Of a stretch of 64,000 nucleotides of DNA, positions 4,600 to 59,307 are shown one piece after another. Position numbers and translations under genes: made by a program. Where the stretch lies: positions 62,001 through 126,000 of the IMG/VR virus record IMGVR_UViG_3300037264_008423; one strand, given 5' to 3'. Position 1 is the first letter of the stretch. Each line of letters begins with the position of its first letter. The notes beneath the pieces are model-generated. The model was given only the letters and a program-made list of their open reading frames with translations. It had not been told where the DNA came from and ran no database searches.

Positions 4600-5036
4600 A
4601 TGAGCTTGTGGAACCAGTATCGGTGCTTTTACGCAGAAAGCGCCAGGCCAAGTGGAGGGAGCGCAATAAAGCTCAGATCGCGGCTAAGGACAGGCGCTAT
4701 AAGTTTGATAACCGTGATAAAATTCGAGCGCGCAATAAGCGGTGGTATGTTAACAATACGGCCAAATATAAGGCAACTATTGCGCGAAGGCGTTTGAAGC
4801 GCAGATACGGTATAACTCCAGAAGATCGTGCGGCGATGGCGATTGCACAGAAAAACCGTTGCGCTATTTGCGGGGACGAATTTACTGATACACCGTGTTT
4901 AGATCATGATCATTTAACCGGTAAATTGCGCGGTTTGCTCTGCCGGGGGTGCAATGTCGTGCTTGGTTTTATTAATGACGATATCGCTGTCCTTGAGGCG
5001 GCGATTAACTATCTCAAATCCGGTGGTGTCTTATGA
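4596..5036 (+). CDS. Endonuclease VII-family (His-Cys) homing endonuclease
   Basis: CAICG...LDHDHLTGKLRGLLCRGCN motif after a basic N-terminus. More AT-rich than its neighbours, with ATGA overlaps on both sides. Confidence 0.85.
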   Translation: MNELVEPVSVLLRRKRQAKWRERNKAQIAAKDRRYKFDNRDKIRARNKRWYVNNTAKYKATIARRRLKRRYGITPEDRAAMAIAQKNRCAICGDEFTDTPCLDHDHLTGKLRGLLCRGCNVVLGFINDDIAVLEAAINYLKSGGVL

Positions 5037-6244
5037 ATAATGTTGGTGATGCGAAAATTTTTAGTGTTCCGGGCGGCGCTGTCAACGGCAGCATCACTTA
5101 TGTGTGGTCGTTTTGGGACAATGACGTGAGGGCGACCCGCGAACCCTTCGTGGCTAAAAAGCTGAACGTGGGCGGAGCTGGCTTGCCGGTCTCTTGCGAA
5201 TACAGCGACGGGTTTGGCGTGAGCGGCCTCCTGAACACGACGATCACCGTGAACGCGCCCCCGGTGATCGTGGGCGCGCCCACCATCAGCGTGAACGACG
5301 CGCTCTTTCCATTCACGACCACCCTGACTTCCGTCACGTATGACCCGGAGGCGGCGGGGGCGCTGGCCTACGCCTGGTATGAGGGTGCGAGCGCGTTGGG
5401 CGCGGGGGTCACGGTGCTGCTGAGTCCGGGCACCTGGCAGAATAGCTTGACCCTGGCGGGAGTGTCCGCCAACCGCACCCTGACCCAGGAGATCACCGAC
5501 GCAGGAGCGGGAGTGACCCGGATGGATTACGCCGTGCGCGGCAGCGCCGCGACGGGCTTGATGGGCGGCGGGGCGGCGGTGGGCAGCACGATCACCCCCA
5601 CCGCGAGCAATCTGCCGGAAGTCATCATCGGCCCCGATCAGCGGGTGACCTTTACCGCTTACGCTCAGGACCGGGCGGCAGGCCAGTTGAGTTTTGCCTG
5701 GGAACTTAAGACCGAGGATGGTTGGGCCGCCGATTACAGCCTTACCGACGCGCCAGTCCAGTTGGCCAACGGCTCTTACCGCAGCCAGCTTTCCCGTCCG
5801 GTTTACGCTGAAACGCCCGGCCTTAAAGTAGCCCGTTGCACGGTCACCAACCTGGCGACCAGCCAGACGTTATTAATCCGCAATCCGGTCCGGCTTGTGG
5901 CCGCCCAGTATCCGGTGATCACGCATATTGCCACGGACGCGGGGTTGGTCGGCGGCAATTACCAGGTATTGCGTGACAGCTACGTGCATTTTACGGGCAC
6001 CGCCACGGATGCCAACCATCTGCTGTTGAACTACCGTTGGGACTTTATTCAGCCGCCAGGGCTGACGCTCTACGGTCGCTCCGTTATGCTTCGGCCCGAT
6101 CAGCACGCCTATTACGATCAATCCGCCCTGTTCGCCGGGCCGCTGCCCATCACCGGCGACTTGACGGTCACGGACCGCTTTGGGAAGAGCGCCACGGTCG
6201 CCATTCAAAGCTTTGTGACCGTTCAAGTGTGGGCCACGGCTTAG
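5033..6244 (+). CDS. Putative structural protein with Ig/PKD-like beta-sandwich repeats
   Basis: 403 aa, Thr/Gly/Ala-rich, with PKD-like motifs (LAYAWYEG, LSFAWEL, VHFTGTATDANHLLLNYRWDF, LTVTDRFG). Confidence 0.55.
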   Translation: MNNVGDAKIFSVPGGAVNGSITYVWSFWDNDVRATREPFVAKKLNVGGAGLPVSCEYSDGFGVSGLLNTTITVNAPPVIVGAPTISVNDALFPFTTTLTSVTYDPEAAGALAYAWYEGASALGAGVTVLLSPGTWQNSLTLAGVSANRTLTQEITDAGAGVTRMDYAVRGSAATGLMGGGAAVGSTITPTASNLPEVIIGPDQRVTFTAYAQDRAAGQLSFAWELKTEDGWAADYSLTDAPVQLANGSYRSQLSRPVYAETPGLKVARCTVTNLATSQTLLIRNPVRLVAAQYPVITHIATDAGLVGGNYQVLRDSYVHFTGTATDANHLLLNYRWDFIQPPGLTLYGRSVMLRPDQHAYYDQSALFAGPLPITGDLTVTDRFGKSATVAIQSFVTVQVWATA

Positions 6245-7102: not shown

Positions 7103-7588
7103 ATGAACAGCAAAATTGTAAGCATAGCCTTGTATGGCAAGCGTGGCGGCGCTGCTCTTGTGGACCGGGATATTTTTGAAAAAATTGGCCATTTTCATTG
7201 GCGTCTGAATAAAGGCGGATACGTGGTTCGCTCGGTGCTTATCGACGGAAAGCACACGATCAAATATCTCCACCACGAGGTTATGCAGCCGGGGGATGGC
7301 GCGGAAGTTGATCACCGTAATGGCTTGAGATCGGATAATACACGTAAAAATTTGCGTCTGGCTACTCGCGCTCAAAATAACGGCAATACCGAAAAGCACG
7401 GCATCCGGTCTTCCCGGTTTAAAGGAGTCAGTTGGGCAAAACACCGCAGCAAATGGAGCGCGCAGATTCATAACCATAACCGTAAGCAGCATTTGGGCTT
7501 GTTTGAAGACGAGGCGGACGCCGCACGAGCTTACGATGCCGCTGCTATTGAGTATTTTGGAGATTTTGCAAAAACTAATAACCCTTAG
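7103..7588 (+). CDS. HNH endonuclease with C-terminal AP2 domain
   Basis: YLHHEVM...VDHRNGLRSDNTRKNLR (HNH_3-like) followed by FKGVSWAKHRSKWSAQI...HLGLFEDEADAARAYDAAA (AP2). Confidence 0.9.
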   Translation: MNSKIVSIALYGKRGGAALVDRDIFEKIGHFHWRLNKGGYVVRSVLIDGKHTIKYLHHEVMQPGDGAEVDHRNGLRSDNTRKNLRLATRAQNNGNTEKHGIRSSRFKGVSWAKHRSKWSAQIHNHNRKQHLGLFEDEADAARAYDAAAIEYFGDFAKTNNP

Positions 7589-8309: not shown

Positions 8310-8885
8310 ATGAGAAAAATACAGCACATCAGCGGTAAAGTTCAGGTTCAAATTGTGCAGGACTATAAGGAGAAACTCCCCAATGGCCTGCACCGCTACA
8401 CCTTAAAGGAGATCGCTCGCAAATACGAGGTTAGCCTGAGCACCGTGAACAACCTGGCGCGCACGGCGCGCTGCCAGGGACGCCCCCACGGGGGTCGCGA
8501 GCAGACCGTCCCCACGCCGCGCATCCTCAAGATTCTGCGGGATAGCACCGAGCCAGGGATCAGCCTGGACGAGGTTGGCCGTCGTAATCCGCGCTGCCTG
8601 GTGCGGCGCGGTAAGTCTGTGGCGGTGCCGCTCACCAAGCAGCGGGTGTCGGAGATCATCCGCACGTGGTCCAGGAAGCTGGATATGACTAAGATTCATG
8701 GCCGAGGTTTCAAACCGGGCGACCAGATCGAGTGGGCCGACCAGATTTACACGGTCCTGCGCTACGACAGCTCCCGGCAGGGCGCGGTGCGCGAGGGGAC
8801 TACGGACCAGGGCCAGGTCATCGATCCATTCCTGTGGGTGCATGGCGGCTGCCGTAGCAAGCGCCTGGATTACGAGGGTAGCTAG
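8310..8885 (+). CDS. Putative HTH DNA-binding protein
   Basis: YTLKEIARKYEVSLSTVNNL helix-turn-helix, plus a second sigma-r4-like SLDEVGR...LTKQRVSEII segment. Confidence 0.6.
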   Translation: MRKIQHISGKVQVQIVQDYKEKLPNGLHRYTLKEIARKYEVSLSTVNNLARTARCQGRPHGGREQTVPTPRILKILRDSTEPGISLDEVGRRNPRCLVRRGKSVAVPLTKQRVSEIIRTWSRKLDMTKIHGRGFKPGDQIEWADQIYTVLRYDSSRQGAVREGTTDQGQVIDPFLWVHGGCRSKRLDYEGS

Positions 8886-10036: not shown

Positions 10037-10221
10037 ACCCTGTCGGAGCGTTGTTTTGCGCCGAAACCAGACCCCGTGAGTCGGCATTTGCACTCTGCCG
10101 TGGCGTCTGGAGCGAGGCGGAAAGTGAAGTGGTTCGGGTCCAAAGTTTGTGCAGGCTATGCGAGTATGGACACCGGATACGTCCGCTGGTTCGGTTTACC
10201 CGCGCCCTGCCCCGACAGGGT
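10037..10221 (+). ncRNA. Putative structured RNA containing a delocalised CRISPR-repeat copy
   Basis: Bracketed by a 10-bp inverted repeat ACCCTGTCGG (10037-10046) / CCGACAGGGT (10212-10221), with internal stems. 10142-10164 AAAGTTTGTGCAGGCTATGCGAG matches the 3' 23 nt of the array repeat at 21/23. Confidence 0.6.
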
Positions 10222-10235
10222 TTTGTATTTACGGT

Positions 10236-13200
10236 GTGCAGTTGGAGAATTTAGACGATGACGTGAGCGTGAAGGATCTGGCGGACTATCCGCGCTACCT
10301 GATCCGCAACCCTCAAGGCGACTACTGGTCCAATGACTGGGGATGGGTGGACTACGCCAGCGCCGACATTTTCAGTCACCTGGAAAAAGAGCGGTTCGAC
10401 CTGCCTTCGGAGGGTCAATGGGTTCCCCTGGCCGAATCCCGTCCGGTTATTGGTTTCCCCGGCAATGACTTGAAGGCGCTCCTGGGAGAGGATTTTGTAA
10501 ACAAAGCGGACGCCTTCCTTCAGGAGCAGGGTATGCTGTGCCTCCTGGAGTGGCACCCGCAGGGCCGTCGGGTGGGCCAGGCCCAGGCGGCGGGTCAGGC
10601 GCTCACGGCGCGCTTGAGCCTGAACAGCGCCGACAGCCAGCTCTTGCGCCGCGAGGGGAGCCTGAAGCTTTTAGATCAGTTGCGGGAGAGCGTGCGCGGG
10701 TTTCTGCCCAAGAGCGCCGAGAGCCGGGTCCGGGTGGTTCCCCAGCGTCCCCAGTATGACCGCTGGAACGACCGCTGGAACCTGGAGCTGGTGGTCTTGG
10801 AGGCGTCCGAGGACGACTTGGAGTCCAAAGAGGTCTATTTTGACGATGATCCACCTGAATTTGCCGCTCCCCAGGGCCTTAGCCCGGAGGGAGAGCGCGC
10901 CCGGCAGATCATTGTCCAGGTGCTTCGGCGCAATGGCGATCTGGATTCACGCGGTCAAAAGCATGTTTTCTATACCCCCGAACAATGGGCGCTAAAGGCG
11001 GATGAGCATGTTAAGGACGGGGTATTAGTGGTCGTTCACGATGGCGGCAGCCACGCTCCTTACTTTCACATGTCCTACGCGGCTGAATTAATGCTGAGCC
11101 GGATGGACCTGGCCCTGCGCCGGGAGGGATTTCAAATTTACCCCTACGCCCCTCATTACTCGGTGATTGCTCCGGTGGAACATGACGAGGCTAACCAGTG
11201 GTTTGTGCGCCAGATCGAGGATTGGTTCCAGCGAAACCCGGACCCGGCTGCGGTGCCCGGCGAGGAGCCGCCGCCCCCGGCAGCCACAGGGAATGTCCCG
11301 GAGAGCTTGGAGGACGATGACGATGTAAACTGGAAGGACCTGCAACTGCCGCTGGACAAAGAGGCGGCGATCCGGCACGTGTTTCGGCAGGCGGGGCTGA
11401 AGATCACGTCGATTCAGGAAGTGCCTGAAGACCAGGACTGGGGTGAGCTGGGGCACGCCCAGCGCATCATCGTCACCCGTGTTCCGCCCAATCCCGATCA
11501 GCCCTGGACTACGGACATAAACGCGTGGGAGGCAGTCGATGAGTTTTGTTTACGAATCAAGTCGGCCCTCTATGAGATCCTGGACACGGATGACATCGAG
11601 TGGCTGAGAAACTGGGGCCTGGAGGACCAAGCGCCGGAGGGCCGCCATTGGTATATCTGGTGGTATATCGGCGACCCGGACATCAAGGAAGAGCGGGAAA
11701 TGAATGAATCGGACGAGGACGACTTCGACGTGAAGGACTACTCGGACGACATCCCGCAATCGGATGACTTCCAGGCTTACCTGCTTCAGCGCGGATTTCG
11801 CAAGCTTTCGGGTCAGATGGGAGACTACTTCAAGAAGCTGCCTGCTGCTTACGCGCGGGTTCGGGTTTATCAGTATCCCAACTATGTCAGCTACCTGCTG
11901 GGCCTGAAGGAGGGCAACCACTGGTTTAAGTTGAGCGAGATGACCAACGCCTACCGGGTCCTGTCGGTTTTGCAGCAGCGAGGGCTGTTCGACGTGCGGG
12001 AGGGCCTGGACGAGGAGTTTGGAGCCGATGACGACCCGGAGCTGTATCTCACGCCCACGCCGAACCTTCAGGAGCGGTGGAATCAGTTCGAGGCGGCCTG
12101 GCGCAGTCAGTGGGCGCTCATACAGCGCGGGGTTAATTTCGGCCAGCGCACCGCTTACCTGGAGGGGATCATGCCCTCGCACCTGCGATGGCGCGCCGCG
12201 TTCCAAGAGGTTCAACGGCTCGTTTACGAGCACTTGGGGGGCGGACGCATCGCCGATTTCAAGTATCACCGGGATGGCTACGTCCTGTTTCACATCTACG
12301 ACCTGGGCGGCGTGGTGGAGAGCGAGGCGGAGAGTGAGGCGGATGATGTGGACTGGAAGGAGATCTCTTCCTATCCCAAGCCCAGCGCGCGGGAGGTCCG
12401 GGAAGCCATGAAGCGCCGGGGGATCGTCTATAATCGCCTGGTGCGCGGCAAGGATGTGGTGACCTTCCTGGGCTGGTTTAAGCGGGGTCAACTCGAACTG
12501 GATGTGCTGGCCCTGTTGCGGGAAGCGGCGGCGGAAGCGGGTCTTGACCAGGAGCACGTCCAGTTTTTCTATATGCCCGGCGCGGGTGAGGTCGCGATCA
12601 TCGCGGCGCGGACGGGCCTGTTGGAAAGCGAGGAGGATGAGGACTTTGACACTAGAACCTTGAAGGATGTGTCTGAAACTGGCAAGTTAGTGCCGGAAAT
12701 TGTGGCGGCGATGATCAAAAATGGGGTCATCCATATGATGGTTCGCAGGCCGTGGCAGCCCCCGCCCCACGACTTGCTGCTTTTTATGGGCTTGTGGCAG
12801 GCAGGCAAGACGGACCAGGAGGCCGCCCAGGTTTGCGCGGCGATCCTAAGAGATTTGCGCATTCCCATTACTTCCAGCTTGGACGACTGGTTCAACTATA
12901 TGCCCGGCTCCGGCGATTTCGACCTGGCGCTGCCTGCTTACCTGGTCTTGGACTGGGAGAGGTATGTGGTGGAATCCCAGGCTGGCCTGGTCCAAAAGAT
13001 CATCGAGGCCCAAGGCACGGTTCTAAACGTGCAAGTGGCAGACCGAGAGGAACTTGTCACGATTCAAGGCGAATGGAAGCCCGGAGCCACGGTTCAAGCT
13101 CTTGCCGAGGCCATTAGCGTGGATGCCAATCGGATTCAGTATGACGCCAAAAATGGCGAATTTACGGTGCTGGCAACCCGGCAAGCCCTTGTGCAAGAGG

Positions 13201-14765
13201 ATCAGGCGGATGGCAAGGCCAGCGACACCAAACGGGTCGCCATTGTGGCGGTGTTTCGGCAGAAGCAGGACGATCCCGCCTACGAGTGCCTGGTCTGCAA
13301 GCGCGAGGGGCCGCCAGCGGAGGGCGAATGGGTGATCCCAGGTGGTCATGCCGAGGAGGGCGAGGAGATCAAAGTCGCCGCGCGGCGTGAGTTGCAGGAA
13401 GAGGCGCACGTGGACCTGGGCGACCTGACCTTTGTTAAGACCATGCCCAATGAGACGGGGGACTTGGAAGTCCATGTCTTTGGAGCGATCTTGCCGGAAG
13501 GGGAGAGGGCCAAGGCCGGGGATGACGCGGAAAAGGTGAAATGGCTGCCCCTGGACGATCTGCCCAAGCTGAGCCTGGATAATGACAATTTGATCCGGGA
13601 AGTGGCCGAGGCGATGGAACTGCAACGGCTGCCCTCGGTGGACGAGAGCCTGCCCCCGCGCCTGGCCGACCAGATTCGGTCAAAGATAGCGGCCCTGAAG
13701 CCGCGCCGCGCGAGCCGCGCCGGTATGAGCTTCGAGGTTCAACAGCCAGAGGGATTTGTGGATCGGCTCATCGAGGGGATTGAGCGGGAAGCGGAGCAGT
13801 TGCAAGCCGACGCTCAGCCCGAACTGCGTCTCATGGACCTGATCGAGGATGCCTACAGCCAGACGGGCACCTATTTGTTTCCAGACGACCAGCAGGACGT
13901 GGAGCGATTGGCGCGCGTGCTGGTTCCTTTATTCAAAAAACCAGCCGGACGGCGGATCAAGGAGAGCGCGGACGCTCCCCCGCGCTATGGCACCGTTACC
14001 GACGAGGTAGTGCCTGCCCTGGAACAAGCTCTGGTGGAGATCTTTGGCCAGCGTTATGACTGGCTGGTGCCCCACGTGATCCAGCACATGGACCCGGAGA
14101 TCTCTTTGATCGCGATGGAGGGTGATCGCGTGATCGGTTTCTACATCCTGGGCCGCCGTTCGATCTTGGACGGCGTTAAGAGCGAGCACCTGAAGCCCAC
14201 TGAGGATTTGAAGCCCTATCGGCAGCGCCAGGGCATTGAGGGGGTAGCCCTGGGCATTGTGCCGGATCGCCGGGGCACGGGCCTGGGCAGCCGGTTCAAA
14301 GACTATCCACAAACCCTGGGCGCGGATTATATGTGGGGTCTGCAAATGCATGATCTGGATAACCTGAGCCACTGGCTCAAGCGCCGCCGCATTGTGGCGC
14401 GCAACCCGGAGATGGTCGCGACCCTCCAGGACTTTAAACCGGGGGCGGTAGCGGAGGCCAGCGAAGAGGATTTCGAGGCCAAGGACTTGGAAGATGATTT
14501 GCTGAATGACGAGCATTTTCAAAAGTTTGCCCAGGAGCACGGCCTACTCTACCACCCTGGCGCTAAAATGGTGCGCGACGTGCTGGATAATGTTTATGGT
14601 TCCATTTGGTTTAAGACCGGCCCCTATTTAAATCGGGAGGCCACGGTCCGCCAGTGGACCCAGGTGTTTTCCGACTATTTCAAGATCGATCCCGCCCGGA
14701 TGAAAGTGGCCTATTACCCGCCCAGTGGCGACATTATGGTCATGGTCACGAATCTGGTTCTGTAG
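10236..14765 (+). CDS. Modular polyprotein-like protein with 7 acidic tag linkers; cargo includes Nudix and GNAT domains
   Basis: Likely start GTG 10236 (TATTTA-N4-GTG). Nudix box GGHAEEGEEIKVAARRELQEEAHV at about 13341. GNAT motif A VALGIVPDRRGTGLG at about 14245. Recurring E(S/A)-acidic-KD tags. Confidence 0.75.
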   Translation: MQLENLDDDVSVKDLADYPRYLIRNPQGDYWSNDWGWVDYASADIFSHLEKERFDLPSEGQWVPLAESRPVIGFPGNDLKALLGEDFVNKADAFLQEQGMLCLLEWHPQGRRVGQAQAAGQALTARLSLNSADSQLLRREGSLKLLDQLRESVRGFLPKSAESRVRVVPQRPQYDRWNDRWNLELVVLEASEDDLESKEVYFDDDPPEFAAPQGLSPEGERARQIIVQVLRRNGDLDSRGQKHVFYTPEQWALKADEHVKDGVLVVVHDGGSHAPYFHMSYAAELMLSRMDLALRREGFQIYPYAPHYSVIAPVEHDEANQWFVRQIEDWFQRNPDPAAVPGEEPPPPAATGNVPESLEDDDDVNWKDLQLPLDKEAAIRHVFRQAGLKITSIQEVPEDQDWGELGHAQRIIVTRVPPNPDQPWTTDINAWEAVDEFCLRIKSALYEILDTDDIEWLRNWGLEDQAPEGRHWYIWWYIGDPDIKEEREMNESDEDDFDVKDYSDDIPQSDDFQAYLLQRGFRKLSGQMGDYFKKLPAAYARVRVYQYPNYVSYLLGLKEGNHWFKLSEMTNAYRVLSVLQQRGLFDVREGLDEEFGADDDPELYLTPTPNLQERWNQFEAAWRSQWALIQRGVNFGQRTAYLEGIMPSHLRWRAAFQEVQRLVYEHLGGGRIADFKYHRDGYVLFHIYDLGGVVESEAESEADDVDWKEISSYPKPSAREVREAMKRRGIVYNRLVRGKDVVTFLGWFKRGQLELDVLALLREAAAEAGLDQEHVQFFYMPGAGEVAIIAARTGLLESEEDEDFDTRTLKDVSETGKLVPEIVAAMIKNGVIHMMVRRPWQPPPHDLLLFMGLWQAGKTDQEAAQVCAAILRDLRIPITSSLDDWFNYMPGSGDFDLALPAYLVLDWERYVVESQAGLVQKIIEAQGTVLNVQVADREELVTIQGEWKPGATVQALAEAISVDANRIQYDAKNGEFTVLATRQALVQEDQADGKASDTKRVAIVAVFRQKQDDPAYECLVCKREGPPAEGEWVIPGGHAEEGEEIKVAARRELQEEAHVDLGDLTFVKTMPNETGDLEVHVFGAILPEGERAKAGDDAEKVKWLPLDDLPKLSLDNDNLIREVAEAMELQRLPSVDESLPPRLADQIRSKIAALKPRRASRAGMSFEVQQPEGFVDRLIEGIEREAEQLQADAQPELRLMDLIEDAYSQTGTYLFPDDQQDVERLARVLVPLFKKPAGRRIKESADAPPRYGTVTDEVVPALEQALVEIFGQRYDWLVPHVIQHMDPEISLIAMEGDRVIGFYILGRRSILDGVKSEHLKPTEDLKPYRQRQGIEGVALGIVPDRRGTGLGSRFKDYPQTLGADYMWGLQMHDLDNLSHWLKRRRIVARNPEMVATLQDFKPGAVAEASEEDFEAKDLEDDLLNDEHFQKFAQEHGLLYHPGAKMVRDVLDNVYGSIWFKTGPYLNREATVRQWTQVFSDYFKIDPARMKVAYYPPSGDIMVMVTNLVL

Positions 14766-14770
14766 CCCGT

Positions 14771-14959
14771 ATGGCACACTATACGGACGCGGACTACGCG
14801 GATTTTTTAAAGGCCCTGAACGAGGCTGCCATCGAGGTTAGCGACTGGGAGGCTAAGTTCATCGAGTCCAACCTGGAGACCGAGATGTTCTCACCCCGGC
14901 AGGTGGTGAGTCTCAATGAGCTGATTGAGCGGTATGGCAAGCGCATTGGCTGGCTATGA
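14771..14959 (+). CDS. Hypothetical protein
   Basis: 62 aa from ATG 14771. Confidence 0.55.
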   Translation: MAHYTDADYADFLKALNEAAIEVSDWEAKFIESNLETEMFSPRQVVSLNELIERYGKRIGWL

Positions 14960-15234
14960 GGAAGGTGATTACAGGTTATCTTTACCGGGGCCAGCCCATC
15001 TACGAGGAGTGGAGCGATGATAAGCTGGAATTAAAGTGGTTCAGCCGCGACATCATGCCCCTGAAGGAGGGCTGGAAGTTTAAAGATTGGCACTTTCTGC
15101 ACGCGATCCGCTTTGAGCCTCACGAAAAAGAAGGTATGTCCGGCGACCCTGAAAAGACTTCCAGGGTCGTCGCGCGGGTGATGGAGGGCCGGGAGCGAGT
15201 TTGTCAGCTTACCGGAGTGGAAAAAGTGGTATAG
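14956..15234 (+). CDS. Hypothetical protein
   Basis: 92-aa ORF with an ATGA overlap. Confidence 0.55.
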   Translation: MRKVITGYLYRGQPIYEEWSDDKLELKWFSRDIMPLKEGWKFKDWHFLHAIRFEPHEKEGMSGDPEKTSRVVARVMEGRERVCQLTGVEKVV

Positions 15235-15293
15235 TAAAAAAAGTTTACTTTTTTGATTGCACTCTTTTCAGTCTTCGCTTAATCTCTTTTAAG

Positions 15294-16985
15294 ATGAATA
15301 CGGAAAGACAAGATCAGCCCTCTGTGAATCCCGCTCCGGCCAGCGTAGATGAAGCGCAAAGAGCCAAGCAGGAAGCCATCGCCCAGGCCAAAGCCAAAGC
15401 CCAGCGGAAGCAGGAGGAGAAAGAGGCAAAAGGTTTGCCCCGCTCGATTAAGCTTAAGCCCAAGCGCGTGCTGGAGTGGGAATGGGGTCCCTACCTGTAT
15501 AAGCAGCTTCGGGTGTGGGAGGCGACGACTTTTATGCGCCGCGAAATCTACCGTGGCCTTTTCAACGCGGACACTCCTCCCTATAAGACGGGGCACGACC
15601 GGTTGCAGCCTCACACCCAGGTATTCGGAGCCATCACCACTTACGCGAATCGGCTTTTAAAAGATTTTTCCGCTAAAGTCCAAATCCTGCCTGCCTACAT
15701 TACGGGGTTCATGACCAAAATTTATGCCGAAGACTATGCCGCTCGACGGGAACACATTTTGGTGACGGGCCTGGACTTTATTCCGATAGGCGGCTTTCCC
15801 GCGCAAGTGGAGATTCGGGCGGAGAACGTGGAGATTTTAGTTAACCCCGAAGATCCTCGTGGTTTTCTGATCCGGGTGCCTTTTTACCGCCACGATGTGC
15901 CGACCAAAAACGGCGGAACGAAATCAGAGGTCGTTTACGTGACCTACGTGATTGATCCCAAGGGGGACTGGCAGACGGGCAGCAGCCTTAAAAAACAGCA
16001 CCGCGCCAGCGCGTTTGACGGCACGCCTTTGCTGGAAAGACTGCGGACCGGCGAGCGCACGATGGGATCGTTGAAAATTTTGGGCAAGTTCCGATACGCT
16101 TCCTCCAGCGAGGCGAGGCTATTGCGGGAACAGGAGGACCGGGTGAGGGAAGCCAAAAAGAAAAACGATCCCTCGGTTGTAAAAATACCCTGGGAAATCA
16201 CTGATCCTTTCACGGTGGATGGCGTATTGCTGCCGCCCTATAAGCGCGACAAGTATAAGCGGCGCGTGGTTTACGAGCCGGTCCTGCAACTGTCTTACTA
16301 TCTGCCGCCGCTGCCCCCGGAGCGGGAACGGCGCGGCTTGGCCTTCTGCTACACCGATCCAGATCGGTTTATGGCGATCAAGATCCATCAAAATTTTGAG
16401 CGGGACCTGGACGACGAGCTGGTCCGTAGATCCTTGTTTATGTCGCAGAAGATCTATGAGCGCCACAAGCTGCTGGACCCCCACAACAAGATGTCGGTCA
16501 TGTCCCCGGAGCAAATCCGTGAGCTAGTTGAGCTTTCGGATCGGCGCTACACCGGTATTCGCCGAATGACGCGCTTGTTTGGGACGGGAGGCAACTCTAA
16601 AATGAAGGGCGTGAGCCAGAAAATCAAGGGGATTACCCTCCATTTTGACCATTCGGTAGTGAAAGCTTTCATGAACTTGGTCATCGAGCGCAACGCCGCC
16701 GAGTTTTACTATTTTGACGCGGACCGGCGCTACATGGAGCACTATCACTGGTTCATTCTCAGGGACTATTTTGCGCAGGCGTGCAAGGTGCTCCAGATCA
16801 AGTTCCATTACCTGGAGGGCTGGCAATTTAGCGATTGCCAGGCGGAGGAGAAAAAAGGCGGTAACTGGGACTTTAATAAGATTTACTTGCGGATACGCGG
16901 CGAAAAATCGAGGCGGACTCGTGCCGAGCACGAAAAATACAGTCAGGAACAGTATGAAAGGAGCTTAGCAGATGAAAAACCTTAG
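15294..16985 (+). CDS. TnpB/Cas12-like (type V-like) CRISPR effector, RuvC apparently inactivated
   Basis: 563 aa from ATG 15294, about 0.85 kb from the array. Segment order parallels TnpB/Cas12: N-terminal RSIKLKP strand; last WED strand VLQLSYYLP; RuvC-I-like strand RRGLAFCYTD (GID position reads AFC); basic bridge helix; FDHSVVKAFMNLVIERNAAEFYYFD (RuvC-II region); YHWFILRDYFAQACKVLQIKFHYLEG. No CxxC finger or RuvC-III. Confidence 0.7.
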   Translation: MNTERQDQPSVNPAPASVDEAQRAKQEAIAQAKAKAQRKQEEKEAKGLPRSIKLKPKRVLEWEWGPYLYKQLRVWEATTFMRREIYRGLFNADTPPYKTGHDRLQPHTQVFGAITTYANRLLKDFSAKVQILPAYITGFMTKIYAEDYAARREHILVTGLDFIPIGGFPAQVEIRAENVEILVNPEDPRGFLIRVPFYRHDVPTKNGGTKSEVVYVTYVIDPKGDWQTGSSLKKQHRASAFDGTPLLERLRTGERTMGSLKILGKFRYASSSEARLLREQEDRVREAKKKNDPSVVKIPWEITDPFTVDGVLLPPYKRDKYKRRVVYEPVLQLSYYLPPLPPERERRGLAFCYTDPDRFMAIKIHQNFERDLDDELVRRSLFMSQKIYERHKLLDPHNKMSVMSPEQIRELVELSDRRYTGIRRMTRLFGTGGNSKMKGVSQKIKGITLHFDHSVVKAFMNLVIERNAAEFYYFDADRRYMEHYHWFILRDYFAQACKVLQIKFHYLEGWQFSDCQAEEKKGGNWDFNKIYLRIRGEKSRRTRAEHEKYSQEQYERSLADEKP

Positions 16986-17655
16986 CAACAACAGCCAAGC
17001 GGTGGACCAGAACCTCGACCATCAGCTTGAGGCGCTATTCAAGAGCCAGTCGGCAAGCACGGAGAAAATTGCCTGGGTGATGATGGAAATGGTGGAGCGC
17101 CTGGATGGGGGATGGGTCCCGCGCAATGTCGCGGCGGTTACGGACCATATCCAGACCAAATATCGGCTCAGCAAGTTCATGATTGAAGGTTATTTTCGCG
17201 TGGCGAGAAAACTAACCTTGGTGGGGGTTTTTAGCGAGAAAAACGCCGCCGCCAGGGTGGTGCAGTTCTTCAGTATTGACGCCCAGCAGCAGGCGTTGGG
17301 CGGTATCCCTGTTTACCAGGGACCCGGTAAGAAAGCCAAGATCGAGAAGCTGCACCAGATTGAGGACCGGGAGGTCCCGATGATTTTTGACGAGCGCCTG
17401 CGCAAAATCCGTTCTGTGGAGGAGCAGGCGGCTTACACGGCGCTCGCCATGCGCCAGGTTGGACCGGTCAGCAAGTGCGCTGTGCGGTTTTGGCCTAATG
17501 GTGTGTATAAGCTGATTAAGAAAGCGAGCCGCGTGGATCAAGCTTACTGCTCTGACGCGCTGAAGAGACGGGGAGTGGAGTCCGTTCCTGATTACGCGCT
17601 AAGGGCGCAGATTGACCGGGACATCGAAAAAGAATTTGGCTCTGAAAAGGGCTGA
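16972..17655 (+). CDS. Hypothetical protein translationally coupled to the effector
   Basis: 227 aa, overlaps the effector stop by 14 bp, and is the last gene before the array. Confidence 0.75.
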   Translation: MKNLSNNSQAVDQNLDHQLEALFKSQSASTEKIAWVMMEMVERLDGGWVPRNVAAVTDHIQTKYRLSKFMIEGYFRVARKLTLVGVFSEKNAAARVVQFFSIDAQQQALGGIPVYQGPGKKAKIEKLHQIEDREVPMIFDERLRKIRSVEEQAAYTALAMRQVGPVSKCAVRFWPNGVYKLIKKASRVDQAYCSDALKRRGVESVPDYALRAQIDRDIEKEFGSEKG

Positions 17656-17657
17656 AA

Positions 17658-17834
17658 AATACACCGTATCGCAGCGGTGTTTAGCCAGGGGATCTGCGCC
17701 TGCGCCGATTCCTTGGGGAAGTCCTCCACACTGCGAGCGCCGTCGATTTTCGGCTTAACTTTAAGTTGGCCGTGCGGCGGCGCTCGCAAACTTGCTCTTT
17801 GACAATTGATGCTGAGTGACTTGCGGGGTGCGGG
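17658..17834 (+). ncRNA. Putative tracrRNA/scoutRNA-like structured leader region
   Basis: Hairpins 17661-17680, 17685-17716 and 17732-17788 (14-bp outer stem). CCTCCACA at 17723-17730 is complementary to repeat nt 20-27. Confidence 0.5.
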
Positions 17835-18405
17835 GTAGCACTGCTTAAAAGCTTGTGGAGGCTATGCGAGTCCACCTTTACTATATAGCTGACGGGTGAA
17901 AAGCGGGTATCACCGCTCAAAAGCTTGTGGAGGCTATGCGAGGCTGAGCTGGATAGGCACTCGGAAGCGGTCGTGCAAGTAGCACCGTTAAAAGCTTGTG
18001 GAGGCTATGCGAGCGCAGCTACCCCTAAGACCTTTTCCACCGGCGTTCTGTATCACTGCTTAAAAGCTTGTGGAGGCTATGCGAGATGACCATTGCGCCC
18101 ATGATGTGGCGCTGCGACTGGTATCACCGCTTAAAAGTCTGTGGAGGGCTATGCGAGAAGGTGGCTTACGGATACGCTGCTTAAAAGCCTGTGGAGGGCT
18201 GTGCGAGATGAGTGTCCCGAAAGCATTGAAGTATCACTGCTTAAAGGTTTGTGGAGGGCTATGCGAGAATAAAGTTTAGGAACGACGTGAAATTACTGAG
18301 GTATCACTGCTTTAAAGCTTGTGGAGGCTATGCGAGGATGATCTGGTCGTAACCATACGGCGCTTTGTAGTATCACTGCTTAAAAGCCTGTGGAGACTAT
18401 GCGAG
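17835..18405 (+). CRISPR. CRISPR array, 9 repeats / 8 spacers, consensus GTATCACTGCTTAAAAGCTTGTGGAGGCTATGCGAG (36 bp)
   Basis: Repeats start at 17835, 17907, 17979, 18050, 18121, ~18171, 18231, 18301 and 18370. Spacers are 36, 36, 36, 35, ~13, 23, 33 and 33 nt. Orientation inferred, not proven. Confidence 0.95.
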
Positions 18406-18430
18406 CACGTGGACAGTTCAGAGCAAAAAG

Positions 18431-18453
18431 CGCAATCTCCACAAGCTTTTAAG
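18431..18453. repeat. Anti-repeat (inverted copy of the CRISPR repeat core)
   Basis: CTCCACAAGCTTTTAAG (18437-18453) is the exact reverse complement of repeat nt 10-26. Pairing extends with bulges to CGCA at 18431. Confidence 0.85.
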
Positions 18454-18476
18454 TGTTAAAAATAGTTCTACCGGAC

Positions 18477-18893
18477 ATGGAACAGCTCATTGCCCATTTA
18501 GTCGGAGATTACGTGCTACAGAGCCAGTGGATGGCCAATAACAAAGACCGGGAGAACCTGCCCTGCCTGCTGCACTGCCTGCTCTACACGGCCTGCTTCC
18601 TGGCGCTTACCGGGTCCTGGAAGGCCCTGCTGGTGATCGGCGTGACCCACTTCCTGATCGACCGCTTCCGGCTGGTCCGTTACCTGATATGGGCTAAAAA
18701 CTGGCTGACGCCCCTGGGCTACTACCCGTGGAGCGCCTGCCAGAGCACCGGCTACCTGGATGTGGAACAGGACCCCATCGGGCTTAAGGAACCGTGGGAC
18801 CAGCGGCCCATCTGGCTGCGCGTGTGGCTCTTGATTATCACTGACAACACCCTGCACCTGGCTCTCAACTACGCGGCCCTCAAATATTTGTGA
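18477..18893 (+). CDS. DUF3307-family membrane protein
   Basis: LIAHLVGDYVLQSQWMA...K, LLHCLLY, THFLIDRF and DNTLH motifs. Confidence 0.8.
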   Translation: MEQLIAHLVGDYVLQSQWMANNKDRENLPCLLHCLLYTACFLALTGSWKALLVIGVTHFLIDRFRLVRYLIWAKNWLTPLGYYPWSACQSTGYLDVEQDPIGLKEPWDQRPIWLRVWLLIITDNTLHLALNYAALKYL

Positions 18894-18989
18894 AATACTT
18901 CCTGCTCGCCCTGTTCTCCCTGGCGGCCACGACTTTCAGCCTGGCCTGGGACTTATGGCGTCAACACCGTAAAGAAAGGAAAGGAACCC

Positions 18990-19199
18990 ATGACAGTCAA
19001 AGCGAAAAGTCTGACCAAAAACCCCGCGCCTAAAGCGCGCGAAGTGGATTACGTCTGCCCCCATACCGGCCACACGGTCTATGTGGCCCACGGGCACATC
19101 ACGATCCAGGCCCACGGGCACACCACCCGGCTCTCTATCGCGCAATGGGCCAAGCTGGGTCGCATCGCTCTTCAGGTCGGGGAGTTTTTTGACCTATAG
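18990..19199 (+). CDS. Hypothetical protein
   Basis: 69-aa ORF preceded by GGAAAGGA. Confidence 0.55.
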   Translation: MTVKAKSLTKNPAPKAREVDYVCPHTGHTVYVAHGHITIQAHGHTTRLSIAQWAKLGRIALQVGEFFDL

Positions 19200-19202
19200 C
19201 CT

Positions 19203-19646
19203 ATGAGACCCCAAAGACCCATTACCACCCTGCGTGTCTCCTTTGATATTGGAGGCGTGCTCACCAAGTATCCCGAAGTCTTCAAGCCGATCATCAAAGC
19301 CCTCCAGGCAGCCCAAGACGTGGAGGTCTATTTCCTGACCGACATGCCCAAGGTCAAAGACGCCCTGGCCATGCTGGAGATGAACGGCATCCAGACGCCC
19401 CCGGAGCGGATCATCTGCTCGCCCTTTAAGCGGCGCGGTGAATCCTGCAAGGCGGTGGACTGCCTGACCAAGGACATTCACCTGCACATTGATGACTTTC
19501 CCGCCTACGTGGCAGCCGGGGCGCGGGTGCGCCTGCTGCTCATGCCCGACCTGGGCCGCCCCTACTACGCCAAAGACTGGAAGACAGACGGCAAGGAAGG
19601 CCGCTTTGGCCACTGGGTAGAGGACGAGCCAGAAGCCGCTTCGTAG
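19203..19646 (+). CDS. HAD-superfamily-like phosphatase
   Basis: RVSFDIGGVL (motif I-like), YFLT, K, LHIDD. Confidence 0.6.
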   Translation: MRPQRPITTLRVSFDIGGVLTKYPEVFKPIIKALQAAQDVEVYFLTDMPKVKDALAMLEMNGIQTPPERIICSPFKRRGESCKAVDCLTKDIHLHIDDFPAYVAAGARVRLLLMPDLGRPYYAKDWKTDGKEGRFGHWVEDEPEAAS

Positions 19647-19742
19647 GGGTCCAGTAAAGGGTCGAAGTGTAAGCGTTATATTCTGGTCAAGAGTCGAGGT
19701 TCACGCGGATTGGGTGTTTACAGGCCGTCAATAGGGTTTGAT

Positions 19743-19770
19743 TTGACTTTTACTAAAAAATGTTTACATT
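19743..19770 (+). promoter_or_regulatory. Sigma70-type (early) promoter
   Basis: TTGACT-N16-TACATT with the same GTTTACATT extension as the other early promoters. Confidence 0.6.
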
Positions 19771-19885
19771 TTCCTTGCGAGCTAACGGGGTAGGGGTGTA
19801 AACTTTGAAAAATTTGGACGAAGTGGCGTACCGTGGAAGGGCGCGCGCTGAGTCCGGTTCTGCCTGATTACGGCGGTAATGTGCT

Positions 19886-21199
19886 ATGAATGAAGCAATA
19901 ACAACGGGTAAATATGTGGTGACGACCCTGCCCCTTGAGCACTGGATCAAGCCCATTGAGTGCGATTCGCGGCAGGAAGCGGAGGATGTCTGCGGGGCGC
20001 TGCGCCGAGTGTGTGGCTCGAAGTTCGGGGCCAGTTGCGGCTGGGAAGTGTTGGAGACGATCCGCGCGCGCCGGTCGGAAATACGGCAACATCGCGCCAT
20101 CATGCAGATGATGGGCGAGGCCGCGCGGAAAGTGGAAAAGCTGATTAAAGTGAAATCCAGGAAAAAGCCATGAACTCCGTAGAGTATGCCATCGGCGGAG
20201 AGCCGATTCAGCCTTACCCGGACGAGCCGCACCCTGACAACGAGGCAGACTGGAAGCAGTGGTGGGTGCGCAAGCACTATCAACCCGATAGGCCGCTCCT
20301 TCAGGGCGACCTGGTGTTCATGCACCGAACCTGACTGGAGACTCTGGCCCGTTGGCCGGTCTCTCCTAAAACTAAGTTATGAAATCTGGTGAATTAAAAT
20401 GCGGCGTGGCACGGACTTGCGAGTCGTGCCTGCACCTGCGGCTCAGGACGCTCCAGGATCGGAAGCACGAGGCAGGCTACCACCATGCCCGGCACTGGTG
20501 CGCCAAGAATGATTTTCCGACGCTGCCGGGCGCTTTGCGCTGCGGCGGGGATGACTATGAGCGTCTTCAGGCGCGCTAGCTAAGGTAAACTATGAAAATA
20601 ATCAAACAAGGAGCTGTGGCCGTTGCCGGCGTAAAGTGGTGGTTGGGTAAAAAGGTCATCTGTGGTGTCTGCGGTTGCGAGGCGGAGCTGGAAGCCACAG
20701 ACAACGTGGCCTCGTTGACGGGCCATGATACGCGCCGGGCGGAGATCGCCTGCTGCATGGGCGGCTGTCTCGGAGTGATGGTCTTTTCGATGAATTTAAA
20801 GGAACTCCAAACCAAGGTTGCTTATGAGCCCGCCGAACAGCGTGATCGGGAAACCCAAGAGCCTCTTGTGGGGATTTGAGGAGCGCGCCTGCACTCGCTG
20901 CGGCGAGGTCAAGGGTGGAAGTCCATATCGGCTGTGCCGGTGCCAGCGTGAGGAACGCGGCATCCGGGACGGCGCGCAGCCCCATTTTGATCATGCCCAG
21001 GAAAATCCAACCCAGTCCTGAGATTACCGCGTGGACCAAACGTCTTGACGCGCTGCTCAAAGAGTGCCCACCGGGCCATTGGCTCTTCGCGGCCAATGGC
21101 CATCTGGTGATCCTGCGCTACCAGCGGGGGCGGGAGCGCACCCTCACGCGCGATGGCGGCATGGACCCCAAGCCGTTCCACACTCCGCGCCAATTTTAA
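19886..21199 (+). other. Cluster of small hypothetical genes (19886-20173, 20379-20579, 20592-20879 and an ORF ending at 21199), several with CxxC motifs
   Basis: Tandem short ORFs downstream of a promoter, e.g. CESCLH, CGVCGC. Confidence 0.5.
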
Positions 21200-25572: not shown

Positions 25573-28500
25573 GTGACGCGCGCCGAGCAAGCCATACGTA
25601 GTTTGGTTGAGGACGAGGACTTCGAGCTGAAGGACCTGGTGTCGGACTATGACGGGAATCCCATCCTGAAGCTGCCCCGTGGCCGGGAAGAGGTATTGGT
25701 CGAGTTAGGGGGTGAACTATACACAGGCACCGCCCAAACCTTATGGGACTGGCTGCACGATCCGTATATCTGGCGTTTTGTGATATGGGTGGACGGTCAC
25801 CTGGTTACCGGAATGCGAGGCAATGTCACTGACATCAACGATGCTGGTCTTTCCATCAAGCTCCTCGATCAGCAGGGGAACTACCTGCGCAAGACGGTTC
25901 AGAAATCTGAACCGGTTATCGGTCTTAATTCCCGCACGGAGAGGGGGCAGCGTCCGCCTGATGCGGTCGCGCTGGAGTTTCTCCCAGCGGGTTTTAGACT
26001 GAGCGAGTCCGAGGAAGAGGACTTTGACACCAAGGATCTGGTTGGAGAAGCGGTGTTGATGCCGGATACGGCGCAGGCAGCCGAGCTAACGGCGGAAGCT
26101 TTGGACGGGATCACGAAGGCCATCGAGGCGGGACCTAAGCTGGACTGGACTAAAAAGGAGTCAAAGGGTTTGTGGCTCAAGGAGTGGCCAGGACTACTGC
26201 ATAAGTTTAGCACGGACAGGGTAAAGCTGCGCTATTCGCCAGCGGGAACGTTTCATGCGGCTTATCAGTATGGTGGTTTGATTGTTATCTTTGTGCCGCC
26301 TTTGACCGAGATGGGGCCGGGCTACCGGCTGGACTTAACTCGGCGCACCTTGGAAAAACTTGTCCATCATGAGCTGGTGCATCACGCGCAATGGCAGCGC
26401 CATCAAGGCAAAAACAAGGGAACAATCAGCCGTAAAGGAGTTGCTCAAGACCCGGCTGCTTATTTTAACACAAAATCGGAGCTTATGGCCAGGGCGCACG
26501 ATTATGTCTTGGGTCTGGCGGGGCGCGTGGGTGGCTACAGCAACGGGAAGATCCTTTCCCGCTCGGAGGTCATCTACCGCATTCGGCAGCCCGGAGACGA
26601 GCGTGGGAGCCTTAACTTGAAGTATTTGACCCCCAAATCCAGACGACGTTTTTTCAAGTATGCTTACCAGTATGCTCAGCAGTTACCAGAGTCGGTCGAG
26701 GACGATTTCGAGACCAAGGACCTGGAGACCCAGGACCCGACCCGCCTGCGTATGCCGGTTGCTTTTGCCAACGTGCCGGAGGGGTTTGAGTTTAAAAAGG
26801 ACGATGGACAGGCCGTGCGCAAGCAGGGCACGGGCTACACGGTGGGCGGCGAGTTTCATAACCTGGGCAATCCAAAATACTGGTGCTACCCCGTGGACTG
26901 GGATCTGCCGACGATCAGTTCCTTTGGCCGGAAATGGTATCGCACGCGCCAACCGTTGCCCCCGCTGTCCAGGGCGCTGGAGTCAGTCGAGGACGATTTC
27001 GAGATCAAAGACCTGGAGCTGTCCGAGGAGGAATTGGATCTGCTGGCGGCTACGGAGGTCGCCGACCGGCTGAATCGGGCCGGGTTCAAGTTCACCATCG
27101 ATAAAAATCTGCACTTCATGCTGGATGACCGGATGCACGGTCGGGAAATCCGGTTGGGGCCAACGGTTCAGTTTATCTTGGAGCCGCGCAAGACCAATGC
27201 TGACCGGGGTGAGTCCTGGGTTAAAATGTGGACGCGCATTCAGTATATTCCCGATTACGGCGAATTTTATACTGTCTGGAAGAATCACTTGCAGCAGGTG
27301 GTGGGGGCAGAGAACCCCATTTGGATCTTTGGCAACAATGCCTATGAAATTACGATTCCCGTAGGCCCGTCCACGCAACAGAAGATGGTGGAGCGCCTGG
27401 CTGAGAAGATCCAGGAGTCCCAGCCTGCGGACCGGGAGCGGCTTGAAAAGGTTTACGATAAAATCTACAAGTTGGCGGAAGCGCACGGCCAGGAGTCCGA
27501 GGAGGATGATTTCGAGACTAAGGACCTGGAAACCAGCTCGGATGAAAGCCTGATCGTAGGCCACGCGACCGAGGGTCAGAGTCCCCATGATTTGGCGCTG
27601 CGCGTGAGCATGTATGGCTGGCAAAACCCGGTGTTGTCCGAGCCTGGCCCGGACGATCCCAGTTGGGAAGTGCGCTTTAATTATCCGCGCGGCGCGATCC
27701 CGGACAACGATCCCGCGCAAGTGGACCAGGCGGCCTGGCACGTGATCGAGCTGGCGGCGGCCATGTCCTTTCGGGGCCACATTCGGGTGACACGTGTCCA
27801 GGATGCCGACTATGACTTTGTTTTCCGCGTCGAGCCGCTGGTCCAGGAAAGCGAGGACGACGATGATGTGGACATGAAGGCGCTCTTCGACGATCCGCCC
27901 TCCGAGTGGCGCTACGTGGGAACGGTCCAGGTGGACCAGGACCAGGGTATCGAGCGCTTTGTATTTCGCAGACACGGCATAATTGATGAGACTTTGGAGA
28001 TGCATCTGCATGAGCAGGCCCCAGGGCGGTGGATCGTCAATTTTTACGTTCAGGGCGTGGGATTCCTGAGCCGCACGGAAATTCATGTCAACGGCTTGAC
28101 TCAGGCGTCGCACATCGCCCGGCAGCAGGCGACCGACTTTTTTACGGAAAACGGCTATCTGACTCCGATCACGGAGAGCCAGGAGCGGGAGACGCGCCGA
28201 TACAAGGTCACGGCGGACCCTGAGCACCTGGATCAGATCGAGCAGCTTTTCTGGTGGGTGAACAGCACGCATTCGGGCCACAGTGGCAGCGCCAAGATCT
28301 ACGTGGATGGCGACGGCGCGGCGCGGGTGGGGATCGAGAAAGAGGAGGGCGAGCTAAAGCGACCGGAGGAAGAGGTCCATTCCCGGTGCGACGGCGAGGC
28401 CGAGTTCTCGGTGTGCCTGGAGGATGAGGAGGACGACTTCGAGGTTAAAGACCTGGTGCCCGACCCGGCTTATATTCAGTGGGACCTGGTGGGGACCGCG

Positions 28501-58923: not shown

Positions 58924-59307
58924 ATGAAAGCGACTTTGGCTATTCTTAAGCACCTTTTAGAGGACGACGAAGAAGATTTTGACCTGAAAGACCTGGCGGA
59001 CACCCCGCCGTGCCCTGTGTTTGCGCTCGTCGATGGACTTACCGGCTTTGCTGACCCCATCGGCAGCGCCATTTACCGCAATTGGAAGATTTATTACGAC
59101 AGCCGTCCCAATGATGCTTACGAAATCGACTGGATTCGCTACAACCACACCCCCAATAAGACCTACAGTCGGCGGAGCCAGCGCCGGTTTGAGCAGGCGG
59201 TCCTGGACCGGGGCGGGGGAGGCCGCCTTGAAATCAAAGTGCTGGACGGCACCCTGGGGCCGCACCGGTGGAGTGTGCGCGTGCAGAGTTCCGGTTCTTG
59301 CGCGTGA
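58924..59307 (+). CDS. Small protein with an N-terminal acidic tag
   Basis: ILKHLLEDDEEDFDLKDL. Confidence 0.65.
   Translation: MKATLAILKHLLEDDEEDFDLKDLADTPPCPVFALVDGLTGFADPIGSAIYRNWKIYYDSRPNDAYEIDWIRYNHTPNKTYSRRSQRRFEQAVLDRGGGGRLEIKVLDGTLGPHRWSVRVQSSGSCA

Follow-up and report, generated by a model that had tools for sequence, protein, structure and literature searches.

Comparative analysis of a phage CRISPR locus suggests that positions 17656-17795 (+ strand) probably encode a tracrRNA-like scaffold RNA of approximately 130 to 140 nt, belonging to a phage-borne, effector-only type V system with a divergent Cas12f/TnpB-like effector. The window, which is the whole stretch of 64,000 nucleotides that was analyzed, comprises bases 62001 to 126000 of a 238,436-bp IMG/VR virus record (G000) that originates from a sediment metagenome and is 96% complete as judged by CheckV. 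An earlier note on this DNA had proposed a scaffold RNA in the interval 17658-17834, which fills the entire gap between the stop codon of the upstream gene (17655) and the first CRISPR repeat (17835). That proposal is supported by the fold of the effector, the conserved structure of the region, covariation in trans with the repeat in 7/7 lineages, a copy of the element in the relative L022, and the unstructured nature of the repeats. The features of the locus, in window coordinates, are as follows.

15294-16985, + strand: effector gene (P0004, 563 aa), most likely for a Cas12f/TnpB-like protein that is very divergent and lacks a zinc ribbon
16972-17655, + strand: partner gene (P0002, 227 aa), the 5' part of which overlaps the end of the effector gene
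17661-17680, + strand: hairpin 1, present in the minimum free energy (MFE) fold, with a covarying stem
17685-17716, + strand: hairpin 2, corresponding to helix P2 of the family, present in the MFE fold
17717-17730, + strand: single-stranded linker, supported by cofolding and by trans covariation with the repeat
17732-17788, + strand: hairpin 3, supported by the MFE fold and by covariation
17789-17834, + strand: array leader, with a conserved box and then a G-rich segment that ends in TGCGGG
17835-18405, + strand: CRISPR array of nine repeats
18434-18450, + strand: inverted partial repeat of 17 nt, a perfect complement of repeat nt 10-26
10139-10164, + strand: solitary repeat-like unit (nhmmer E value of 2.6e-4)

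Upstream of the array, the same strand carries open reading frames (ORFs) of 1538 aa (with a NUDIX domain), 92 aa, 594 aa (the effector) and 227 aa (the partner). The repeats of the array are 36 to 37 nt long, with the consensus GTATCACTGCTTAAAAGCTTGTGGAGGCTATGCGAG, and are separated by spacers of, in order, 36, 35, 36, 35, 13, 23, 33 and 33 nt. As the earlier note had remarked, the repeat has almost no stable hairpin: it folds no better than its shuffles (z score of +0.46), and related repeats have z scores of -0.4 to +0.9. A search of the 238-kb genome for cas1 did not find the gene. Comparison of two near-identical phage variants, L016 (6189-6359) and L017 (6208-6700), showed that the scaffold and the distal spacers are common to both and that the leader-proximal spacers differ, which indicates recent gain or loss of spacers. 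Since the spacers that turn over are those next to the structured region, the leader lies on the scaffold side of the array.

The middle of the array (18121-18267) is irregular, in that repeats 5 to 7 carry an extra G (37 nt) along with other changes and spacers 5 and 6 measure only 13 and 23 nt, which suggests decay or recombination within the array. When the phage's own genome was searched for spacer targets, none was found except for a 19-nt partial match of spacer 4 (18086-18120), with one mismatch, in a 1145-aa ORF at 27584-27602 (blastn-short E value of 0.005). This match spans spacer positions 13 to 31, outside the 5' end of the spacer, and is probably due to chance. Three spacers searched against viral contigs had zero targets, and a motif scan of viral contigs with the repeat returned only one chance match, inside a coding region (L009). 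A blastn search of a phage database with the locus matched only the gene that follows the array (18453-18893), which encodes a DUF3307/phrog_6676 membrane protein; no other part of the locus is similar in its DNA to catalogued phages, the similarity being 69% to the Mycobacterium phages Phrappuccino and Settecandela.

Some further observations concern the surroundings of the system. The solitary unit at 10139-10164 retains two thirds of a repeat, from its 3' side, and lies directly against the ATG at 10166 of the 1538-aa ORF (10149-14765), in which a NUDIX hydrolase domain at residues 1029 to 1149 is the only recognised domain. In L011, a separate 171-aa NUDIX gene is located downstream of the related system. 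A second solitary unit, outside the window at G000 59083-59118 (L007 1489-1524), is a full 36-nt copy of the repeat approximately 30 nt 5' of a gene. When the would-be guides of both solitary units were searched for in the genome, a second match was not found. Finally, a 191-aa ORF at 8310-8885, located 1.3 kb upstream of the solitary unit in the window, has a sub-threshold Sigma70_r4/HTH match (E value of 4e-5, 23.4 bits against a cut-off of 24.1) and may encode a phage transcription factor.

The effector ORF is 594 aa long, and its real start is probably Met32, giving a protein of 563 aa. Searches of this sequence against Pfam, NCBIfam, PADLOC, PHROGs and PDB sequences gave zero matches, and a word-indexed homolog search returned only the effector itself. 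When 1.84 billion representatives were searched exhaustively with HMMER, only seven relatives were recovered, and the family amounts to only about 8 protein clusters there; a search of viral contigs with alignment A3 found no related loci. Structure was modeled with AF2 on the homolog P0005, for which an 11-sequence alignment was used, the single-sequence model of P0004 having a pLDDT of only 36. The P0005 model (pLDDT 78.9, pTM 0.62) matched AsCas12f in a Foldseek search with an E value of 2e-16 and TM scores of 0.55/0.60. Alignment of the same model with VIA-align gave Z scores of 22.4 for dCas12f (9n9c), 20.6 for AsCas12f, 16.6 for Un1Cas12f and 15.5 for TnpB, with the larger Cas12 types scoring below these; leads from the ESM Atlas agree with a Cas12f-like fold.

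Inspection of the family alignment showed that an HTD motif on the first RuvC strand is invariant and that the aspartate of an FD(Y/F) motif at the start of the C-terminal helix is nearly invariant. The RuvC-II position is ambiguous, being D/E or, in one clade, HSS. CxxC pairs were sought in the family and were absent, and the zinc ribbon (TNB) is missing. Of the features by which membership of Cas12f is judged, a clear RuvC D-E-D triad, the TNB zinc ribbon and a match to Cas12f/TnpB profile HMMs were not found, and the fold alone is shared. A survey of TnpB and Cas12 proteins has described virus-enriched clades with rearranged catalytic sites in which zinc fingers are lost (PMC10691335), and for this reason we call the effector neither dead nor active. 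Taken from the homolog model, the effector is most likely a very divergent, zinc-ribbon-less Cas12f/TnpB-like protein.

In every locus fetched, the effector gene is followed by an overlapping gene for a P0002 homolog of 210 to 237 aa. Searches with the partner against Pfam and the PDB gave zero matches, and neither a sigma-factor domain nor any other Pfam domain was detected even at a lenient cut-off. The related loci fall into the groups L010/L013, L011, L012/L014/L016/L017/L019, L015, L018, L020/L021 and L022/L023. In the relatives, effector and partner are followed by a structured intergenic region and then by an array with a related repeat, of the shared form ...AAAANTTTGTGG-N4-5-(A)TGCGGG. 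In most relatives, the end of the partner gene, with its last codons and the stop codon, extends into hairpin 1 and the 5' arm of P2.

All three hairpins that had been described for the region from the window are present in its MFE structure, with the linker left open. Hairpin 1 (17661-17680) has the arms ACACCG(T)/(G)CGGTGT. Hairpin 2 (17685-17716; arms CCAGGGGATC/GATTCCTTGG) has a stem of 10 bp, two of them G-U, that encloses a small capped hairpin. Hairpin 3 (17732-17788; arms TGCGAGCGCCGTCG/CGGCGGCGCTCGCA) has a GC-rich outer stem of 14 bp, GAGCGCCGNCG/CGNCGGCGCUC, that is nearly invariant in the family, and an inner hairpin (17752-17771) that varies among relatives. The + strand folds at -81.7 kcal/mol, compared with -63.3 +/- 4.2 kcal/mol for 200 shuffles (z score of -4.4; 0/200 as good), and the fold of the - strand is weaker (z score of -2.45). 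The G-U pairs in P2 and hairpin 3, together with the stronger fold of the + strand, point to the + strand for the RNA. A comparison of positions 14000-20000 with Rfam, including tracrRNA (RF02348), gave no relevant match at an E value of 1 or below.

Independent MFE folds of seven loci showed the same order of elements, namely, hairpin 1, P2 with its capped hairpin, the sequence GGGGA, an open linker and hairpin 3; GGGGA is single stranded and invariant in the family. RNAalifold applied to a plain MAFFT alignment returned 30 pairs, 17 of which have compensatory changes, and 93.6% of cells in the pair count are paired. When alignment columns were shuffled, 0/500 shuffles reached any of five measures (compensatory pairs, 17 against 6.9 +/- 1.9), and sliding the partners by 1 to 3 columns reduced the compensatory pairs to 3 to 7; these statistics come from about seven lineages, which are few and related. 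Compensatory changes were seen in all helices of the scaffold RNA: the stem of hairpin 1 covaries (helices 1 and 2 of the pair count), P2 (helix 3) has compensatory changes in 5/7 pairs, and in hairpin 3, helix 4 is 97% paired and helix 5 has compensatory changes in 4/6 pairs. Searched with a covariance model of the family (R1), the 238-kb genome has a single copy, at 17656-17795 of the window (+ strand), with a score of 84.4 bits.

The linker RNA reads GGAAGU followed by the anti-repeat CCUCCACA (17723-17730). The complementarity reported previously is exact, CCTCCACA (17723-17730) being the complement of repeat nt 20-27 (TGTGGAGG). When only the window is considered, the best duplex between the region and the repeat (-25 kcal/mol) ranks 719th of 25,336 windows, and a complementarity of 8 nt is within chance. 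As such a match is unremarkable in a single locus, the case is decided by comparison with relatives, and the significance of the complementarity comes from covariation across related loci and from cofolding. In each of 7/7 lineages, the linker contains its own stretch of 6 to 12 nt that is complementary to the repeat of the same locus, as listed here (linker, then repeat).

Window: CCTCCACA, TGTGGAGG
L010: CACCACC, GGTGGTG
L011: TACCGCC, GGCGGTA
L012/L015: GACCACA, TGTGGTC
L018: TACCAC, GTGGTA
L021: CACCAAC, GTTGGTG
L022: ATTCACCAAGAA, TTCTTGGTGAAT

The match ends 4 to 9 nt from the 3' end of the repeat in every lineage. The assignment of each linker to its cognate repeat is the single best of 5040 permutations, both by match length and by duplex energy. 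Cofolding with the repeat had been named in the earlier note as a check on its proposal; when a repeat-spacer unit was cofolded with the scaffold, positions 17720-17730 paired with repeat nt 20-29, all scaffold hairpins were kept, and the contact comprised 10 bp with a bulge (8 nt perfect). The ddG of this cofold is -7.8 kcal/mol, compared with -2.8 +/- 2.4 kcal/mol for shuffled repeats, 6/200 of which do as well. The comparison of lineages shows that the linker covaries in trans with the repeat, and the cofold reproduces the linker contact.

A second contact had been proposed between CTCGCA (17783-88) and the end of the repeat. CTCGCA is indeed complementary to the last six bases of the repeat; as a repeat contact, it has no covariation support. 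We demoted this candidate for three reasons: CTCGCA is paired at the base of hairpin 3, in its conserved 14-bp stem; it remains CUCGC(A) in loci with a repeat ending in GCGGG; and it is disrupted in L011 and L015. In hairpin 1, the loop comprises 8 nt (17667-17674) with the consensus NWYCGCAN, including AUCGCA at 17668-17673 in the window. Its third base is U where the repeat ends in GCGAG (window, UAUCGCAG; L021, GCUCGCAC) and C where the repeat ends in GCGGG (L010, L011, L012 and L018). This association is perfect but two-state, with 36/720 permutations doing as well. A guide-adjacent pseudoknot is present in published structures of omega-RNAs and Cas12f guide RNAs. We infer from the base changes that the hairpin 1 loop (UCGCA, 17669-73) is a better candidate than CTCGCA for pairing with the last bases of the repeat (UGCGA).

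The locus L022 (on the NCBI GCA_040384185.1 contig) provided a case in which the scaffold RNA gene, at 4926-5088, lies upstream of the effector and away from the array. The annotated start of the L022 effector (5001) probably runs through the scaffold, the likely start being the ATG at 5089. The 160 nt upstream of this likely start have the same architecture (z score of -6.7), and their linker, AUUCACCAAGAA, is perfectly complementary to the L022 repeat over 12 nt. An R1 model built without L022 finds the full-length element upstream of the L022 effector with 25.3 bits and an E value of 5.6e-5. The L022 array leader keeps a degenerate copy resembling hairpin 3 (7311-7372), which scores weakly with R1 (12.7 bits). 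As this element stays in the leader though the scaffold has moved, part of the interval upstream of the window's array may be a leader element.

These results refine the extent of the scaffold. The probable scaffold is placed at 17656-17795, and the last approximately 40 nt of the interval proposed earlier (17796-17834) are array leader, outside the conserved RNA. The leader contains a box, AAACTTGCTCTTTGACAATT, at 17789-17807, which includes a -35-like TTGACA and lies outside the covariance model match. This box hardly varies among L011, L012, L015, L018, L021 and L022, reading AAACTGTTCTTTGACAAT or TGTTCTTTGACAAT in the relatives. A sigma-70 promoter scan of the leader called none, because there is no -10 element at the right distance (16 to 18 nt) after TTGACA; the box looks like a leader or promoter element and may serve as a promoter specific to the phage or as a site of protein binding. 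Pairing of the box with the repeat was considered and dropped, since the repeats differ among loci and the box does not. In the window, hairpin 3 is followed by AAACUUGCUCUUU, in which a clean U-run is absent, and T-rich tails follow hairpin 3 in L011, L018, L012 and L021. A terminator scan of the window calls only an inner site of the hairpin, at 17742-17754. Hairpin 3 is probably the 3' terminal or terminator hairpin of the scaffold, and it may double as a terminator of the operon or of the scaffold.

The same features could mean that the region comprises no more than the operon's intrinsic terminator and the leader and promoter of the array, with cis-acting hairpins and no RNA that pairs with the repeat. 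Such a reading would fit the GC-rich hairpin 3 with T-rich tracts after it in the four relatives, the terminator-like site called within it, the conserved -35-like box that comes next, and the hairpin-3-like element retained in the L022 leader. However, terminators do not need three compensatory helices and an invariant single-stranded GGGGA, and a terminator gives no cause for the linker to track the repeat in 7/7 lineages. In L022, moreover, the copy is not situated between operon and array, yet both the architecture and a 12-nt anti-repeat are kept. We therefore consider this explanation improbable. A structured RNA might also be real but act outside the guide ribonucleoprotein (RNP), as a cis-regulatory 3' untranslated region or as a protein-binding element, for instance, one bound by the partner or used in autoregulation of the operon. 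The overlap of hairpin 1 and the 5' P2 arm with the end of the partner gene in most relatives is compatible with this, as is a partner without known function; covariation in trans with the repeat is unexpected for a purely cis-acting element, and in L022 the copy lies apart from the partner gene, which makes this possibility quite improbable.

It is also conceivable that the functional anti-repeat is located elsewhere, at 18434-18450, as part of a tracrRNA or of the pre-crRNA 3' end, where it would form long processing duplexes, and that the upstream structure has another role. This 17-nt element begins 28 nt after the last repeat, is a perfect inverted copy of repeat nt 10-26, and is the only significant minus-strand match to the repeat in the 238-kb genome (E value of 0.001). 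At -35.4 kcal/mol, its duplex with the repeat is one of the strongest in the window, compared with -25 kcal/mol for the region upstream of the array. However, 18434-18450 has no local structure around it (z score of -0.23) and abuts the next gene, sitting 3 to 19 nt before its start; no equivalent was seen where the arrays of L010, L017/L019 and L022 end; and the element may be a relic of rearrangement. Because a functional anti-repeat at this site would also leave the conserved, covarying upstream RNA unexplained, we regard it as very improbable. The inverted repeat could form a long hairpin with repeat 9 at the end of the pre-crRNA, and it is possibly an auxiliary anti-repeat.

We therefore favor a scaffold RNA encoded at 17656-17795, for which the following mechanism can be envisaged. 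The effector-partner operon would yield the RNA at its 3' end, unless the RNA has a start of its own there; in both cases it would end at or just past the GC-rich hairpin 3. The array would be transcribed from the leader directly downstream of the scaffold. Each repeat, unstructured alone, would then dock on the scaffold via two short contacts. In the first, repeat nt 20-27(29) would pair with the linker at 17720/23-17730; in the second, UGCGA before the spacer may pair with the hairpin 1 loop UCGCA (17669-73) in a pseudoknot-like manner. The Cas12f-like protein would bind this dual RNA, with the spacer at the 3' end as the guide, and the partner of approximately 230 aa may act together with the effector in the guide RNP.

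Comparison with known systems places the locus nearest to type V-F. Bipartite contacts with a guide-adjacent pseudoknot are known from published structures of Cas12f and TnpB, and a similar arrangement is predicted here. Cas12f nucleases use tracrRNAs, and dCas12f uses a single guide RNA and no tracrRNA (PMC13472631); the combination of a Cas12f-like fold with the use of tracrRNAs by Cas12f nucleases supports the scaffold RNA reading, and the guide of dCas12f, the closest structural neighbor, speaks against it. As in type V-F Cas12f systems, the locus has a miniature effector with a Cas12f fold, a structured RNA region of approximately 130 to 140 nt beside the array, apparently on the same strand as the crRNA (judged by G-U pairs and fold energies), and an unstructured repeat that pairs via its 3' half and carries the spacer at its 3' end. 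Unlike in type V-F, the effector has no detectable sequence similarity to any Cas12f, the zinc ribbon (TNB) is missing and the RuvC-II residue is ambiguous, the anti-repeat is short (6 to 12 nt), a partner gene is conserved, and the loci look phage borne, with no cas1 found in G000. The scoutRNAs of Cas12c/d also present a short complementarity to the repeat in a single-stranded part of a structured RNA beside the array. However, our effector model has a Z score of 6.7 to Cas12c1, compared with 20 to 22 to Cas12f/dCas12f, and the complementarity here is longer and bipartite.

The nuclease-dead TnpB/Cas12f derivatives dCas12f-sigmaE and TldR (PMC13472631, 10.1101/2023.11.30.569447) offer another comparison. 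dCas12f is the best structural match of the effector model (9n9c, Z score of 22.4), both proteins having a compact C-terminus without a zinc ribbon, and the solitary repeat-like units beside genes recall the dispersed guide RNAs of these systems. In contrast, dCas12f-sigmaE and TldR use single chimeric guide RNAs, mostly without arrays and with no tracrRNA found, whereas the system described here has a true array with spacer turnover and a separate scaffold, a partner without a sigma-factor match, and an effector that retains the RuvC-I and RuvC-III-like aspartates. Cas12j/CasPhi, CasLambda and Cas12r resemble it in that large phage genomes carry them as arrays with an effector only and no adaptation module. 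They differ in that Cas12r works with crRNA alone, as do Cas12j and CasLambda according to a review text, and in that their structural matches are much weaker (Z scores of 8 to 11).

A literature search of incomplete coverage did not find a published description of the effector family; a V-U or rearranged clade without a name in the 2023 survey may include it. The scaffold RNA is apparently a rare and uncatalogued variant of known RNA-guided machinery. A more far-reaching idea, which we regard as unlikely though conceivable, is that the locus is no ordinary interference system but a type V subtype new among phages. Its effector, Cas12f-like and devoid of a zinc ribbon, would have a weakened or rearranged RuvC and act as an RNA-guided binder of DNA (or RNA), together with the dual guide and the partner. 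The solitary repeats directly 5' of phage genes (10139-10164; genome 59083-59118) would then be used to control the expression of the phage's own genes or those of a competitor.

If the scaffold RNA reading is correct, it would define the guide-RNA architecture of a very rare, phage-borne, miniature Cas12f-like system that has been missed by sequence profiles. The scaffold, its two repeat contacts and the polarity of the array are what reconstitution of the RNP and the design of a single guide would require, and the same elements would be needed to ask whether a zinc-ribbon-less effector of 460 to 560 aa cuts its target or only binds it. The finding would also point to an unstudied accessory protein that is strictly linked to the effector. 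For the path from omega-RNA to tracrRNA/crRNA, the short, bipartite, covarying anti-repeat would provide an additional data point, and a scaffold gene that can move within its locus would provide a further one.
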